Positions 6,500 through 16,494 of a stretch of DNA of 64,000 nt are shown here, in pieces. Positions within the stretch are counted from its first letter, which is position 1. The number at the start of each line of letters is the position of its first letter. The stretch is from positions 1,922,001 to 1,986,000 of the forward strand of contig OX337239.1 in the NCBI GenBank assembly GCA_946965045.2. Direction: 5' to 3'. The notes beneath the pieces are model-generated. The model worked only from the letters and a program-made list of their open reading frames with translations, did no database searches and was not told the DNA's origin. The stretch is from Epithemia pelagica. Lineage: Eukaryota > Protista > Bacillariophyta. The position numbers were made by a program, and so were the translations under genes.

Positions 6500-7434
6500 A
6501 TGGTGGGCCATGAATCGAAACCAGCTTTCTTGCCGCTGATTGCGAACAGCGAAGGACCCTTGTATGCCACTAGTAGCATCGTTTCTAGTGGTCGACGAGA
6601 GCAACAGGACAATCACCATGCTGCTTCTTTTCACCCTGGCGTTCATGCGCCAAAGGAGCATCGTTTCTCGCCGTACGAGTTCAATGGAGGCACAGTGGTG
6701 GCAGTAGCCGGAGAAGATTATGTGGTTATGGCTGGTGATACACGATTGTCCGCTGGATTCGATATTTTGTCACGGGATACCACCAAACTCCACACGCTCA
6801 CACCCAAATGCATTTTGGCCAGTGCTGGATGCAAAACTGATGTGGAACAATTACGTTCCGTTCTCGATATTTACTTGAAGGTACATACTCGTTCGAGTGC
6901 ATGTTGGCATGTGGTTGTTCATCACAAAGAATAATGTTGAACGATTTCCTCGCAGCATCGCCGATCAAATCTCATGTCTTTTTTTGTGTTTGCTTGATTG
7001 TTGACATTTCGTAGATGTATGAACACAATCACCATAAGACAATGGGCACTGTATCTGTGGCTCGATTTCTTTCTACGACGTTGTATCGAAAGCGATTCTT
7101 TCCCTACTATGCGTTTAATGTGTTTGGTGGTTTGGATGCCGAAGGCAAGGGCGCAGTGTATGGGTACGATGCCATTGGAAGTTATGAACGTACACAAGTT
7201 ACAGCAAGTGGATCTGGACAGGCCTACATCATCCCATTTTTGGACAATCTTATTGCAAATCGCAACCGATTGCAAGAGAAGCCAGTCTTACCTGCAGCCG
7301 AAGTGGTGGAGCTCATCAAGGATGCGTTTGTGAGTTGTGGAGAACGCGATATCTACACAGGTGACAAGGTGGAAATATCAGTCATTACTGCCAGTGGAAT
7401 CGACACAACTTATTTCAATCTCAAAGCAGATTAA
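6500..7434 (+). CDS. PSMB1: 20S proteasome subunit beta type-1 (beta6) (exons 6500-6880, 7015-7434)
   Basis: FSPYEFNGGT, AGDTRLS, KRFFPYY, YDAIGSY, ERDIYTGD motifs; intron 6881-7014. Confidence 0.95.
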
Positions 7435-7853
7435 ATGTGGGGCGTCGCGACAGATGAACGATGGATATCTTGCAATACGGAAGGCCATCGTTCTTTTAAC
7501 CAATAGCTGACTGCTGGTACAAATCCTTATTTACGCTCCATATCGTACGAGCCCTACCTACCTACGGATAGGCAGTCACCCCCAACAGGTTGTAATTCGC
7601 TGTCCTCATGATTTTGGAACTACGTTTAATTCTTAGGACTTGCATACCCAAACCAACCACGTCTCAGTTTCGTGGGCATTGGTTTATGGTGCCCGTTGTC
7701 GATGCAACACTTGATCAACAGTGAGTTGTATACTGTTATCGTATATTAGCCACAGACGCTTACCCTGAGAATGACAAACAGAAAGAGTTGCAATGTTTCT
7801 TGGACCCGGTTCAACGATTTTCTTGTGGTTAGGGGCACTCAGGAACCAAGAGC

Positions 7854-9500
7854 TCAGATCTCCGTGGTACTGGCATTACTTTTACTTTCCGCTGAGCACT
7901 GTCTCACTCTATGTTTGCGGTAGCACTTGGTTCCTGAAAGGAGTGCTGCCAATTTGCCAAACCCTCCTCTATCGAACGACAAACATTTGGCGCCCGCCAA
8001 CAAGTACAGGTCCACAAATATACTATTGTAAGCTGGAGCAGAGTGATTCCGAGCAGATGGGGAGTGAAAGGGATGGATTCCTTTGTTGATCTTTTGTCCG
8101 TCGAGGAAGTTTCCTTTTGTGGGAGTCAAGAAATCTCGTCCTCTGTCCAAATGCAGGGGAGGATTTTCGGACGTGCCATTAGCACTCAGAGGAGATACGA
8201 CAACGGTTGAAGAATTGCTGTACTGTCGTCCATACTCCAATGCCAAGATAGAAGCGTCAATGGAATCCGACGCAAAGAAGATGACTCGATCCGGCGACGT
8301 CTTTCCTAGCAATTGTGTACACGCAAGAGCATTGGCCACAGCACGGGAGATATTGCCAGTGTCGTTGGTTGCTGTATAGAGTATGCGGGCATGGGTAGCA
8401 TCGTAGGAGAACCGTGGGAAATTGTCCCAAAATTGCTCCAGCTCATTTCGAATAGAAGCTGTAGGTCTGTCGAAAAAGAGCTTCCAGACGGATGCAAATA
8501 TGGATTCCATACTGGGATCCTCAAGGTTCACTTTATGCGAATCGTAGTACAATTGACCTTCGTGATAGGCTTGAAAGCGTGAATCCAAAACTTGTTTGGG
8601 GAAGGATGTGAGTTTTCGATTGTCCTGTACATCCTGTACACGCGTCAAGGCCGGAAGCAGACCAAATTCTAAGCCACCCTCAAGCATGTACCACGGCACC
8701 GTCCAATTCAGTGGTCCAGGTTCCAGAAAGGTCTCGAGGGGTGCAGGGCGTTCCCAATAAATGAGAATCAGTCGCCGTGTCATGGCTGCTACCTGTAGCA
8801 AGAAAGGCAATGCACGGACTTTCGAAAAACGAAGCAGCAGCAGCAGAAACGATTCATGACAAAACATCGCATTTCAGCGTGAGCACAATGACAGATTCGC
8901 ACATTTAGTCTATAAGCAAAAGAAAGACGTACGTCGATCTGCGAGGCCACCACAAGATTCATCTCGATTCAAACATCTCAAAATAAGGTAATTGTACTTT
9001 CTCCAAGCGGTTGCATTCTGTTCCATTTCCTTTCGACACGATCGATGCCATGCAGTGTAGTCCAAGATCCACGTCGGAAGCTCAGAGTCTTGTTGATACT
9101 GCATTGAACGTGATATTGCCAAGTCTTGAATTTCCTTCTCCGATGAGTTCGAAACAAGGTCGTGAAACAGAGCGTTTGGCTCCACAATCATGGTCATCAT
9201 GGATCGCGTCGACGTAAATTGAGACATGACGGCCGAAAAGACGAACATCATGATGACATTCATCGAAAGGGTAATGGCCAACGTGAGCACAAGCATGGAC
9301 CGGAGATCCCTTCGTTGTCCATGATGGCGTCGCAAAAATCCAAACGAAACGAGGGATCTTGACCTAGGTGGTGGCGGAGGAGGAAGAAACACATGCCTTA
9401 GGGAGTACGCGAGCTTCTTTCTTTTTTGTGGCGACGAAGGCAATGATGAAATTTGACTTTGCGAATCACCATGTTTCTCCGTCCAGCTTGGCGGAATCAT
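7854..9500 (-). CDS. Diatom-type type II membrane protein, putative glycosyltransferase (O-fucosyltransferase-like fold); exons 9500-8933 and 8818-7854
   Basis: N-terminal TM (MLVLTLAITLSMNVIMMFVF). Intron 8819-8932 joins CGGLADR to LRALPF. C-terminal DLYLLAGAKCLSFDRGGFG resembles GT-B fucosyltransferase-like C-termini. The ORF-track start at 9569 is GTG; first ATG is at 9500. Confidence 0.55.
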
Positions 9501-10077
9501 GCTACGTGTCGCTCGGAAAGAGCTGCGAATTGATGCCTCAAGGTCAAGGAGCAGGAGAGGGTCCAGCACGTTGTGAACTCAAGGCTCAAGGAGAAGAGCA
9601 TCTGAAGACTCCACCTCGAACCTCGACAAAAGCGCAACACAACAAACAAATGAAAATCAGTGCCCGCGACCGTGTCACCGCGCTTGGATGTCCCGGCATG
9701 GGCGCCATGATGCACGCCGACCTCTCCTCCTCCTCTCTCATCTCAATCTCGAGGATGAATCCCCCTCACATTTTCAGTTTTCAATTTCGTGAAGAGACAC
9801 ACTCGAACAAATTGTCGCATGCTTTCACAGCTCTCAGCCATGCAAACGGACCATCTACTAGGAAGAAGATGAACTCGTATGTAGGGCTTCGCCACGACCC
9901 ATGTTATACAAGCTCTCATTCGTCACCTTTATTAAAACTAAGCACGTAACTGATGAATTAGCTCTACCTAAACCACGCATGAGTTGTGGACCTGTGGATA
10001 ATTTTTAAGCAAGGCTTGGCTTTTACAACATTCTTGATCTCAAGAGTGACTCGCGTCTTCGTTCTCATGCTTGACTC

Positions 10078-10932
10078 TTACTCCTTATTGATGGCAGCCC
10101 ACTGCGCAGCCAAATCGGCCATGGGGTCGGCTGGAGCCGGTGCAGCTGCGGCAGGAGCTGGTGCTGATCCCGCTGGGGTCCATCCGGCCGGAGCACCTGG
10201 ACTAGAACCACCCTGTGGACTCCACTTGGTCACAGAGTACAAATTCTTGGGGCCACTGCCGGTTGAAGCAAAGGAAGGCGTCGCAGGAGCCGCTGGTGCT
10301 GCAGGAGCAGCCGCTGCCTTTGGAGGTGCGCCATCATGGTCGCTGTTCACCGACGCCCATTCGAGTGCCAAATCAGCCATGCTGGGACCAGTGGGAGCGG
10401 CTGGGGCGGCCGGAGGAGGAGGGGGAGGAGCGTCCAATACCGGAGAGGCGGCAGCCGCATTAGCTGAAGCAGGAGGACTCCATTTACCAACCGTTTTGCC
10501 ACTGACAGTCATTGGATGAGATCCTGTACGGGGACTCCACCGAGTGACAGCGTAGCTGTCCTTGATACCACCACTACTCGCTCCTGCAAAGGCGGGTGGA
10601 GACGGAGCGGGAGGCGCCGCCACTGGAGCAGGGGCCGGAGCCATGCCCGATTCGGAATTCATGGCAGCCCATTGCTTGGCCAAATCATCCATGGTGGTAC
10701 CTCCACCGACGGGTGCAGGTGCCGGTGGAGGAGGAGTAGCAACCGCAGCGCCGCCACCTCCTGGTGCCCATGACGAACCAAAGGAAGAACCACCTGTGGC
10801 ACCGTACTGGGGCGTCCATTTTGTGGGACGATACTTGTAGAGCTCGGTAGCGACACGATGGTTTGCACCATCTTGCACAACAAAGGCTTCGCACGACGCG
10901 ACCAAGACCATGAACGAAACCGAGACCTTCAT
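10078..10932 (-). CDS. PYCO1: Plastid-targeted Pro/Ala/Gly-rich repeat protein, PYCO1-like pyrenoid Rubisco-linker candidate
   Basis: Signal peptide ending CEA-F (diatom ASAF-type cleavage site). Three units, each with YxxT[KR]W[ST]P and MxDLAx[QE]WAx[MVI]N, separated by low-complexity spacers. Confidence 0.75.
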   Translation of the reverse strand: MKVSVSFMVLVASCEAFVVQDGANHRVATELYKYRPTKWTPQYGATGGSSFGSSWAPGGGGAAVATPPPPAPAPVGGGTTMDDLAKQWAAMNSESGMAPAPAPVAAPPAPSPPAFAGASSGGIKDSYAVTRWSPRTGSHPMTVSGKTVGKWSPPASANAAAASPVLDAPPPPPPAAPAAPTGPSMADLALEWASVNSDHDGAPPKAAAAPAAPAAPATPSFASTGSGPKNLYSVTKWSPQGGSSPGAPAGWTPAGSAPAPAAAAPAPADPMADLAAQWAAINKE

Positions 10933-11610
10933 GATGTTTAATACAGACTATTGATTGAGTGAAAGGGAAAGGCGACAATATTGAATTGCTTGGAACGAAA
11001 AAACCGATGAGTTATCCCCGTAACAAAGAAGAATAAGCTTGTCGGCAGTATCTCTCGACGAGTCAACTGGACGACAAAAGGCGATGCTTGATTGAATCTA
11101 TCAGCAACAGCGACAGACACGATGGGCAAACAGGTGTCCGAAAGATCGCTTCAAAGAAGAAGGTACTTCTTGTATTGATTTCAAGAGACAAGAATCGGAT
11201 CGCAAACCCAAATCGATTGTACTCTTCATCCCACATAGGTTGTCACATGACGTACTCCTTTCATAATATGATCTTTGGATGGATGGGAAGCGAAGTGTCA
11301 AAATGAAGATTCGTTCAGTCACGAATACTCGATCTGGCATAGTCCAGTCCTGAAATCGACTTCAACCTACTAGGAGTACTCATTGAGAGTTGAGAGACTT
11401 GAGAGGACTAAATAGCAATGTCTGATATCGGGAAAAGGGAATGGCCGTATATTAATCTATAAAGAACTGATTCTAAATTACAACGTCTTATGCAAGCGAA
11501 CTATGAGCCAAGCGATAAATAATTGTGGGTGGGTTTTGTACCATGGAGAAGAATAAACGAGATGAAAGCGTCTGTGGTCGGGACGTCTGGGCTTCAAGGG
11601 ACCTAACAAA

Positions 11611-13164
11611 TCATGAGCTGACCGGTCGTTGTTCCGGTAATGGTTTTTGTTGAATCAGGGGCTGCAACCGTTGTTTCGCAAGCCTTAAGACTTGCTTTCG
11701 ACCGGCGGCTACAAGCTGGCGTAATTGTTGACCATGGGCTCGTAACCTTTCTTTTTCAATCCAAGAACGCGGACCAGCATTGTTCTTCCACTGATCCCTC
11801 CCTGTCTTTAACACAACAACAAAAATTTGACAGACTCCTTCAAATAGCCACTGAAGGTTGGATCTAACTTGAGGCAGGACTTTTGTCGATATCCATTGTT
11901 TCAGAGACTGCTTACTTTGTTGCGTCCTAGGGTGTTGCCACAGGCGTTGCATGCCCAAGGATAACTGGCGACAGGCTACACATGTGGCTTTCCAACCCAA
12001 TTGCAGTACCGCTTCCATACTGGACTGCATGGGTTCCATAGGGATGCGTTGCCGTGCTTTTTCACGAACATATTCGATTCGTTGTTGGACGACCGGATGC
12101 TGCCAAATATGCGTGTGTAACATACCCAGCACTATGCCCACTAGCGTGGAAACGACAATCCATGTTCGTCGCATTACCAAATTCATCATTGTCAGGGTCA
12201 CTTTGTAATGACTATTGCGATCCTCTTCCATTTGGGCAATACGGATATCCAAGTCTCGACAATCAAATTTGGCCTCTCGTATCAAATCCATTTGCTCCCG
12301 CAAGACGTTTTCCGATGCCTGTAACTCTTGTCGATAGACTTGTGCGGTGCTTACCTGTTGGGCTCGTCCTTCCTTGATCGCACAAGCAACCTCATCATCC
12401 GCGTTTTGTCGTTCCAGCTGCAACTGTTGTTGTCGTTCGGTCCGATCGGAATGGCGTTCCTCATGAACCGTAGTCAATTGCTGCTGCGCAAGTTTAATTT
12501 GTGTCATGAGACAGACAAGGTCGCATTGCATTTTGAGCATTTGCTCTTTCCCTTGTGTTAATTGATGATTCACCATGTCAAGTTCTTTTTCATGTTCTTG
12601 ACATTCGTGTTGCATGCGGCCATATCTGGCAGCCACATCCAATCGATGTTCCATGTTTTGCGTTGCCAAATTATCGTCAAACTCATGCCGTTCCTCTTCC
12701 AATTGTTTGCATCCTTCATCCCATAGTTGATCTCTTCTGTGTTGGAATTCTTCTTGTTGAAGACGCAACTCTTCATCCCACCGAAGCTTTTGTTCGTCTA
12801 GTTCTTGTTGCAACCACTCGACTTGGCCCTGCAACATGTTTCGAACTGCTAGATCGGTATCCAAGTCAAATTCTCGTCTCGATGTATCCGAGTAATTGTC
12901 AATTAGGACTGTGTTGCTTCTTACATGATTTGGGAGTATTGTTGGGAGTGAAAGATGTGGTCGCTCGTGATGGTTCGGATAAGATCGATGGTGTTGTTGT
13001 TGGTGGTGGTGATGTTGTTGTTGCTGCTGCTGCTCCACCAAACTCACCATGCCCATACTCGAGCTGTGGACGCGAGATGTATGGGCATGGTGGGAAAATG
13101 AATCCGTCCAGGCAACCAATAGCCCAACTATGGCAAATGTGTTTAGATGCAATCTCGCAACCAT
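11611..13164 (-). CDS. Coiled-coil protein (517 aa) with signal peptide/probable plastid presequence
   Basis: MVARLHLNTFAIVGLLVAWTDS-F; long E/Q/R heptad region; hydrophobic segment TWIVVSTLVGIVLGML. Confidence 0.8.
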   Translation of the reverse strand: MVARLHLNTFAIVGLLVAWTDSFSHHAHTSRVHSSSMGMVSLVEQQQQQQHHHHQQQHHRSYPNHHERPHLSLPTILPNHVRSNTVLIDNYSDTSRREFDLDTDLAVRNMLQGQVEWLQQELDEQKLRWDEELRLQQEEFQHRRDQLWDEGCKQLEEERHEFDDNLATQNMEHRLDVAARYGRMQHECQEHEKELDMVNHQLTQGKEQMLKMQCDLVCLMTQIKLAQQQLTTVHEERHSDRTERQQQLQLERQNADDEVACAIKEGRAQQVSTAQVYRQELQASENVLREQMDLIREAKFDCRDLDIRIAQMEEDRNSHYKVTLTMMNLVMRRTWIVVSTLVGIVLGMLHTHIWQHPVVQQRIEYVREKARQRIPMEPMQSSMEAVLQLGWKATCVACRQLSLGMQRLWQHPRTQQSKQSLKQWISTKVLPQVRSNLQWLFEGVCQIFVVVLKTGRDQWKNNAGPRSWIEKERLRAHGQQLRQLVAAGRKQVLRLAKQRLQPLIQQKPLPEQRPVSS

Positions 13165-15300: not shown

Positions 15301-16494
15301 ATGGCGTTTACCGGTAAGTACTGCATATACAACAAACTGCTTGAATGTGATTGGTGTAGCTGCGAAATGCTCGAAGCTCACGTGCGAATTTCCTTCATTC
15401 GGTTCTTTGTTTGTGGTGGCGGGATTTGATCCATGATCGATCGACGGATGCGTTCGTCATTCCTTGTAGGAAAACTAATGGGAATGGGAAATCCCCTGCT
15501 GGATATCTCTGCCAATGTGGAACAAGACACGTTGGACAAGTACGACGTGAAGCTTGACTCTGCTATTCTGGCCGAAGACAAGCACCAACCGTTGTACCAA
15601 GAACTCGTCAACAACTTTGCCGTTCAGTACATTGCTGGAGGGGCAACTCAAAATTCCATGCGTATTGCTCAGTGGATGCTTCAGAAATATGGAAAATCCG
15701 ACATGGTTGCCTTTATGGGAGCTGTTGGAGTGGACGACTACGCCAAGCAGTTGGAAGATTGTGCCTCCAAGGATGGTGTGTTGGTCCATTACATGAAGGA
15801 CGAGACCACGCCGACGGGAACTTGCGCCGCCCTCATCAAGGGTGGGGAACGTGCCTTGGTGGCCAACTTGGCAGCCGCCAACAACTTCAAACCCAGCCAT
15901 TTGGAAACTGTCAAAGCTCAGGAAATTATTGATTCCATCGACATTTACTACTCGGCAGGTTTCTTCTTGACCGTGTCGGTCGACGCCCTTGTGACCGTGG
16001 CATCCAAAATGGCTGCCGAAAACAAAATTTTTGCCCTCAACTTGTCAGCGCCCTTCATTGTTGACTTCTTTGGTGACCAATTGGCTACGGCTATCGAATA
16101 TGCCGACTATGTCTTTGGAAACGAATCGGAAGCAGCCACCTATGGCAAGAAACACGGTTTGGGCGAAGACGACCTTGGTAAGATTGCCCTGCACATTTGT
16201 GGACTGCCCAAAAAGAATGACAAGCGACCCCGTATTGTCGTATTCACACAGGGAAGCAAGTCCACCATTGTCGCTACCGAAGGCAAGGTCACGGAATATG
16301 CCGTTGACCCTATTCCGGCCGACAAGTTGGTGGACACCAATGGTGCAGGAGATGCCTTTGTGGGAGGATTTTTGGCCCAACTTTTGTTGGCAAAGGATAT
16401 GGAAGCCTGTGTCAAGGCTGGACACTGGGCAGCTGGCTTTATTATTCAACAATCGGGTACGACCATTCCAGGACCATGTGACTATGACGCTTAG
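15301..16494 (+). CDS. ADK: Adenosine kinase (exons 15301-15313, 15470-16494)
   Basis: GMGNPLLDISA, AGGATQNS, PTGTCA, DTNGAGDAFVGGF (PfkB signature). ATG GCG TTT ACC G|gtaag...tag|GA AAA gives MAFTGKLMGMGNP. Confidence 0.95.

Follow-up and report, generated by a model that had tools for sequence, protein, structure and literature searches.

To our knowledge, no Rubisco linker of red-type (form ID) pyrenoids other than PYCO1 has been characterised. The protein of Phaeodactylum tricornutum is a basic (pI ~10), prion-like chain of 592 aa that contains six tandem repeats of ~80 aa (PMC10288592). Its KWSPRGGS stickers, for which W476 is essential, form a tetrad and thereby plug the solvent channel that the Rubisco small subunits line. 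Two helices at the C-terminus, AAEWGSMNQ and ASEWASMNT, attach to the large subunit at a hydrophobic cleft, where W580 sits in a pocket and N584 is bonded to Y89 (PMC10288592). The helix motif alone binds Rubisco weakly, and a C-terminal fragment gave no gel shift (PMC10288592). Homotypic condensation of PYCO1 is driven by the tyrosine motifs GTGYNP, and its homotypic phase separation has been linked to basic charge and prion-like composition (PMC10288592).

Published statements describe PYCO1 as being without homologues outside Phaeodactylum (PMC10288592) or as "not widely conserved", and no description of PYCO1 homologues was found in the 2024-2026 literature searched. A "short PYCO1 isoform" of P. 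tricornutum, Phatr3_J40791, has been mentioned but not characterised (PMC10288592), and the literature searched contains no mention of it beyond Oh et al. 2023. As for linkers of other pyrenoids, EPYC1 of Chlamydomonas has 5 stickers and CsLinker of Chlorella has 6.

The gene described here lies on the minus strand of a 64,000-nucleotide stretch of the genome of the diatom Epithemia pelagica (contig OX337239.1, positions 1,922,001 to 1,986,000), called the window below. As judged from a Pfam match and from the presence of both sticker motifs, the encoded protein of 284 aa is a previously uncharacterised member of the PYCO1 repeat family.

The gene is real. The reading frame runs from an ATG at 10932-10930 to a TAA at 10080-10078 and is preceded by an in-frame TAG, six codons 5' of the ATG. 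Gene calls on both haplotigs of the ENA assembly ERZ21939226 (contigs of 2.07 Mb and 0.85 Mb) yield the identical protein. The gene also looks transcribed. A single 1088-bp contig of run X4, from the same organism, spans 9932-11019 exactly with a depth of 301, the evidence from runs X4 and X5 consisting of contigs, which prove neither strand nor transcript ends. Depth is zero in the intergenic DNA at both sides of this interval, and the next X4 contig starts over the neighbouring gene. In the marine metatranscriptome run X5, contigs 95-99% alike cover positions 10403-11128. The environmental variant present there shows 12 coding differences, 8 of them synonymous and 4 non-synonymous (N24S, Y43H, D125G, and L166F); none affects a core motif residue, and one in-frame 3-nt insertion falls in a spacer. 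These differences are a signature of purifying selection on the 284-aa reading frame. ORFs that overlap the gene on the plus strand (for instance, 9986-10519) were dismissed as by-products of a GC-rich coding sequence for Ala and Pro.

A phenylalanine at position +1 of the cleavage site is a signature of plastid import in diatoms. The N-terminus of the 284-aa protein, with MK, a hydrophobic core, and C-E-A followed by Phe at +1, reads as a diatom bipartite plastid presequence, and a crude hydrophobicity/aromatic test was positive. The same layout, including Phe at +1, is present in the homologues and in PYCO1, whose N-terminus is rated "Plastid, high confidence" by ASAFind (Oh et al. Dataset S1, PMC10288592).

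The mature chain would have ~268 residues, of which Pro, Ala, Gly, and Ser make up 62%. Basic (K+R) and acidic (D+E) residues number 14 each, giving a net charge of 0 and a pI of 6.8. The preliminary description had placed a Y-x-x-T-[KR]-W-[ST]-P motif at residues 34, 127, and 232, a second W-[AST]-P at 55, 151, and 251, and M-x-D-L-A-x-[QE]-W-A-x-[MVI]-N at 81, 185, and 271, and each of these motifs was found at exactly those residues. They make up three units, which measure 59-79 aa in alignment A1 (Table 1). All nine tryptophans of the protein (39, 55, 88, 132, 151, 192, 237, 251, and 278) lie within the nine motifs, with gaps of 14-45 residues between neighbouring Trp and of 41-60 residues between successive Rubisco-type motifs, of which there are six. 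Each helix motif carries a Trp and an Asn four residues apart (W88/N92, W192/N196, and W278/N282). A chance origin of this pattern is excluded: of 200,000 shuffled sequences of preserved composition, 2 contained one or more copies of the sticker pattern, and none contained either the helix pattern or six W[AST]P. In the motif segments the same codon is used at 15 of the 37 identical residues that have degenerate codons; therefore, the units are regarded as old duplicates held at the protein level and not as the product of a recent DNA duplication.

Table 1. Position of the gene, its putative transcript and the motifs of the encoded protein (window coordinates; residues of the 284-aa protein).
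Feature	Residues	Position	Strand	Basis
Transcript-like extent: ~87 nt 5' UTR, CDS and ~146 nt 3' UTR		9932..11019	-	Run X4 contig
CDS, complete, intron-free, 284 aa + stop (protein P0001)		10078..10932	-	ORF list
Putative signal peptide (MK, hydrophobic core, C-E-A), cleavage before Phe17	1-16	10885..10932	-	Read from sequence
Putative transit-peptide-like region, Phe17 first	17-31	10840..10884	-	Read from sequence, inferred
Unit 1, small-subunit-type sticker, core KWTPQYGA, degenerate	32-46	10795..10839	-	Motif and unit alignment
Unit 1, second aromatic motif (S-W-A-P-G-G)	51-60	10753..10782	-	Unit alignment
Unit 1, large-subunit-type helix (MDDLAKQWAAMNS)	79-94	10651..10698	-	AF2 helix 81-92, highest-pLDDT block
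Unit 2, small-subunit-type sticker, core RWSPRTGS	125-139	10516..10560	-	Invariant in orthologues P0002, P0003, P0010
Unit 2, second aromatic motif (G-K-W-S-P-P)	146-155	10468..10497	-	V148, G149, W151-P154 invariant in orthologues
Unit 2, large-subunit-type helix (MADLALEWASVNS)	183-198	10339..10386	-	AF2 helix 185-195
Unit 3, small-subunit-type sticker, core KWSPQGGS, canonical	230-244	10201..10245	-	Within best PF24428 stretch, aa 213-246
Unit 3, second aromatic motif (A-G-W-T-P-A)	247-256	10165..10194	-	Unit alignment
Unit 3, large-subunit-type helix, C-terminal (MADLAAQWAAINKE)	269-284	10081..10128	-	AF2 helix 270-281, pLDDT block ~73

The three units had been described as complete. This is correct in the sense that none of the nine motifs is missing, but the stickers are of unequal quality. 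Only unit 3 carries the canonical KWSPQGGS, which is identical to a PYCO1 sticker variant. The sticker of unit 2, RWSPRTGS, differs from K-W-S-P-[RQ]-G-G-S at two of the eight positions (K to R and G to T) and retains the Trp, Ser, Pro, and final Gly-Ser. The sticker of unit 1 is degenerate, with Y/A in place of the G-G-S groove residues of PYCO1. Many family members keep this N-terminal sticker as [ST]-x-[EQ]-L-x-x-Y-x-x-T-K-W-[ST]-P, and nearly all the short ones keep the C-terminal helix motif. In the helix of unit 2, the core LALEWASVN shares 7 of 9 residues with LASEWASMN of PYCO1.

Homology to PYCO1, as proposed from the sequence at the outset, is borne out by Pfam family PF24428 (PYCO1 Rubisco-binding repeat), which matches the 284-aa protein in 3 stretches with an E-value of 8.9e-11 and 41.9 bits, above the curated cut-off of 27. 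The homologues P0003, P0005, P0006, P0008, and P0018 also pass this test. The PYCO1 features put forward in support of the proposal, namely phase separation with form ID Rubisco through KWSP-type motifs and a C-terminal helical motif, agree with Oh et al. 2023 (PMC10288592), and both PYCO1 sticker types, KWSP[RQ]GGS and LAxEWxSMN, have counterparts in the 284-aa protein. Thus, GSGPxKNYSMVKWSP[RQ]GGS of PYCO1 aligns with GSGPKNLYSVTKWSPQGGS of unit 3, and GNLASEWASMN aligns with MADLALEWASVN of unit 2 (PYCO1 sequences from Table S1, PMC10288592).

The features that the 284-aa protein has in common with PYCO1 (Phatr3_J49957) are a putative presequence for plastid import, with Phe at +1, a disordered chain of repeats that matches PF24428, a sticker of the type G-P-K-N-Y-S-x-x-K-W-S-P-[RQ]-G-G-S, a helix of the type L-A-x-E-W-x-S-M-N in which W and N are four residues apart, and an aromatic G-x-G-[YW]-x-P motif located 14-24 residues past the sticker Trp. 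However, there are several differences. The 284-aa protein has 3 stickers, whereas the 592-aa PYCO1 has 6. Its helices are interleaved, one per unit, whereas PYCO1 has two and only at the C-terminus. The spacers are rich in Pro and Ala, in contrast to those of PYCO1, which are rich in Ser, Gly, Asn, and Tyr and prion-like. The pI of 6.8 and net charge of 0 also differ from the pI of 10 of PYCO1.

The motif GTGYNP is present in zero copies in the 284-aa protein and in all 50 family representatives described below. A G-x-W-[AST]-P sequence sits 14-19 residues past each sticker Trp of the 284-aa protein, and the G-T-G-Y-N-P of PYCO1 is found ~24 residues past the sticker Trp; another family protein, P0025, has GTGYSP at the equivalent alignment position. 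From this position we infer that the second W[AST]P corresponds to the self-association sticker of PYCO1, with Trp in place of Tyr. The description of the protein as a compact homologue therefore holds with respect to homology, but it is not simply a compact PYCO1, since it is Pro/Ala-rich, lacks GTGYNP, and has a pI of 6.8 instead of 10. GTGYNP, six repeats, prion-like composition, and basic pI were all looked for in the 284-aa protein as marks of PYCO1 proper and none was found; on these characters, the protein is not an orthologue of PYCO1 proper. As described in PMC10288592, Phatr3_J40791 is also short and has a KWSPR/Q sticker, as do proteins of the class to which the 284-aa protein belongs. 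PYCO1 and Phatr3_J40791 are not among the matches listed in the word-index and profile protein searches, an absence that carries no weight, the word-index searches having covered at most 8000 candidates, among which Pro/Ala words were overrepresented. The idea that the gene might itself be Phatr3_J40791, in DNA of P. tricornutum, was rejected: the DNA is present in only four runs of one study, the exact protein only in ERZ21939226, and the neighbouring adenosine kinase described below points to an Epithemia-like raphid pennate diatom.

The structure was predicted with AF2 from the single sequence, with no alignment, and the model (mean pLDDT 47) was used for helix propensity only. The chain is predicted to be disordered, with helices at residues 81-92, 185-195, and 270-281, which correspond to the three helix motifs and have the highest local confidence. 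The helix motif is present in every unit, with three copies and a predicted helix on each. One further helix is predicted at residues 25-33, in the presequence region. According to this model, the mature protein is intrinsically disordered with helix propensity on the helix motifs. A search of PDB sequences returned nothing relevant, the sole match being PsaL, by chance, with an E-value of 1.4. The PYCO1 motifs may be absent from the PDB matches because only 8-9 residues of them are modelled, and the chains searched had at least 20.

A weak beta-hairpin is also predicted at residues 138-151 (10480-10521), between the two Trp motifs of unit 2. The corresponding segment, T-G-S-x-P-M-x-V-S-G-x-T-V-G-x-W-S-P-P, is conserved in the orthologues P0002, P0003, and P0010. 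In view of this conservation, the sticker and the second Trp motif of unit 2 may form one module.

A word-index protein search found at least 5 relatives of 184-428 aa. The orthologues P0002 and P0003 show 57-60% identity to the 284-aa protein and nearly the same signal peptide; the motifs are kept and the spacers vary. Other short family members are P0006 from Epithemia clementina (184 aa), P0028 from Entomoneis paludosa (202 aa), P0005, and P0018. All six proteins have the same type of presequence, sticker-plus-helix units, and a C-terminal helix motif. The number of units varies among the short members. Most short relatives are basic (pI 9-10), in contrast to the neutral 284-aa protein. Alignment A1 comprises 16 units from the 284-aa protein and the five relatives of the word-index search. 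Y, W, and P in the sticker and L, A, W, and N in the helix are invariant in it, among them both helix residues that have been described as Rubisco contacts in PYCO1. No published data on any short member of the PYCO1 family were found in the literature searched.

An exhaustive search of 1.84 billion cluster representatives with the unit profile returned 50 proteins at E <=0.001. Both motifs are present in 17 of these representatives, mostly of 130-560 aa, and this is the class to which the 284-aa protein belongs. Another 8 have KWSP-type stickers only, some of them exceeding 1000 aa with 17-19 copies, and the other 25 have the helix only, including the giant proteins P0007 and P0009. The named sources of the family are Epithemia clementina and Entomoneis paludosa, and the rest are mostly metagenome, transcriptome, and SRA assemblies. 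Four metagenomic proteins of ~1000-1500 aa (P0013, P0033, P0027, and P0035) have 10-20 KWSP-type stickers and neither the helix motif nor GTGYNP; they are possibly long PYCO1-like linkers of other diatoms.

The recurrence of the helix in every unit had been put forward as a feature that would change valency and condensate behaviour. The recurrence stands, but it is not peculiar to the 284-aa gene: the sticker-plus-helix unit is usual in the short subfamily and common in several raphid pennate diatoms. Within its orthologue group, the exact layout of three stickers and three helices is specific to this gene, because in P0002, P0003, and P0010 helix 1 and helix 2 are separated by one or more additional units that consist of a sticker only.

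The helix motif is also present elsewhere in the same assembly. On other contigs, P0007 (4133 aa, L003:201-12602) and P0009 (1882 aa, L004:201-5849) show 59 and 17 matches, respectively, to the helix part of the unit profile, and no KWSP-type stickers were found in either of them. The many matches in two other proteins of the same genome would fit a Rubisco-address motif that several proteins of this organism share. Such a role has been speculated for Phaeodactylum (PMC10288592).

From the presequence and the motifs we infer import into the plastid, Rubisco binding, cross-linking, and pyrenoid localisation, and the 284-aa protein is probably a multivalent Rubisco cross-linker, that is, a linker or co-linker of the pyrenoid matrix. 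The nucleus-encoded chain would be imported into the plastid stroma by means of its bipartite presequence. The three KWSP-type stickers would then bind Rubisco small subunits around the central solvent channel, and the three amphipathic L-A-x-x-W-A-x-x-N helices would place their Trp in the hydrophobic cleft of the large subunit and form a bond through Asn, in both cases as in PYCO1. The three G-x-W-x-P motifs would occupy the place of the self-associating GTGYNP sticker. Because motifs for the small and the large subunit alternate every 41-60 residues, one chain could contact several form ID Rubisco holoenzymes. In addition, with four stickers needed for a plug and only three on a chain, at least two chains would have to share a plug, and this sharing would itself cross-link the network. 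In principle, the 284-aa protein resembles EPYC1 and CsLinker, which are disordered chains with 5-6 evenly spaced short Rubisco stickers, tens of residues apart. However, there is no sequence relationship between them, EPYC1 and CsLinker bind form IB Rubisco, and each of these has one sticker type for one subunit, whereas the 284-aa protein has two predicted types, for both subunits.

Rubisco binding by the 284-aa protein is likely. Three small-subunit stickers represent a low valency when compared with the six of PYCO1, which speaks against a linker. The protein could instead be a client or modulator that binds Rubisco without being a scaffold, tunes the fluidity of the matrix, caps sites or competes with larger linkers, and does not cause condensation alone. 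That just one of its three small-subunit stickers is canonical would fit such a role, as would the lack of GTGYNP, the net charge of 0, the absence of prion-like composition, and the weak binding of the helix in PYCO1 (PMC10288592). Moreover, P0009 and P0007, with their 17 and 59 helix matches, would be better scaffold candidates in the same genome. We nevertheless consider this role unlikely, given that the six Rubisco-type motifs and their spacing of 41-60 residues provide the valency and spacing of proven linkers and that the tetrad requirement forces chains to share plugs. In the same sense, no long KWSP-only protein from ERZ21939226 is among the 50 family representatives, which is weak evidence in view of the clustering at 50% identity and the prokaryote-style gene calls.

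A function unrelated to Rubisco, for instance that of a Pro/Ala-rich secreted, frustule-associated cell-wall protein or of another plastid protein, would mean that the motifs are due to shared ancestry or convergence and serve another partner. The putative signal peptide at the N-terminus and the Pro/Ala-rich, low-complexity sequence of the 284-aa protein would fit such a function, and a feature search of the ESM Atlas gave no information, its scores of <=0.78 being below the useful level. We regard this function as very improbable because the Phe+1 plastid signature is conserved across the homologues and PYCO1 and because the helix residues that contact Rubisco in the PYCO1 cryo-EM structure are among the invariant ones; the PF24428 match, which exceeds its curated cut-off, also argues against it. 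A Rubisco cross-linker thus remains the preferred reading. A further proposal, possible although in our opinion doubtful, is that Epithemia-like diatoms, and perhaps many raphid pennates, have no long PYCO1, so that short proteins with alternating stickers would be their principal, ancestral linkers, and PYCO1 a derived expansion in which the sticker half was multiplied and Trp was replaced by Tyr in the second aromatic motif. If this were true, the 268-residue protein would qualify as a minimal two-site linker of form ID Rubisco.

Contrary to the published statements of no or limited conservation, the PYCO1 motif set extends beyond Phaeodactylum, since at least three further lineages of raphid pennates have it, namely Epithemia-like diatoms, Entomoneis, and environmental diatoms, in which it is carried by short proteins with the two sticker types interleaved. 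The gain in knowledge is incremental, as family membership is detected automatically by Pfam. A neutral chain of 268 residues with three of each sticker would be a convenient minimal construct for studying the cooperation of small- and large-subunit binding in the condensation of diatom Rubisco, and it would also be suited to asking whether a motif with Trp in place of Tyr supports self-association.

With respect to the surroundings of the gene, the window belongs to the 0.85-Mb haplotig, and the sequence of the other haplotig, identical across the gene, departs from it 322 bp past the stop codon. Beyond this point the two haplotigs are unalignable (window ~7000-9756 versus L001:4177-6855). 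In this region, the ORFs 8910-9569 and 7854-8867 of the window haplotig gave no Pfam match, and on the other haplotig there is a gene for 979 aa, the first 760 of which gave no Pfam match. The difference is possibly due to a haplotype-specific insertion. Upstream, at 11611-13164 on the minus strand, there is an ORF of 517 aa with a poly-Gln/His tract and a long Gln/Glu-rich middle region that looks like a coiled coil; it gave no Pfam match and shows the highest contig depth in run X4 (681). A PfkB-family adenosine kinase is encoded at 15433-16494 on the plus strand. No Phaeodactylum protein is present among the named entries of its best 120 matches; it is 91% identical to its Epithemia clementina counterpart and shows ~80% identity to Entomoneis/Amphiprora proteins.
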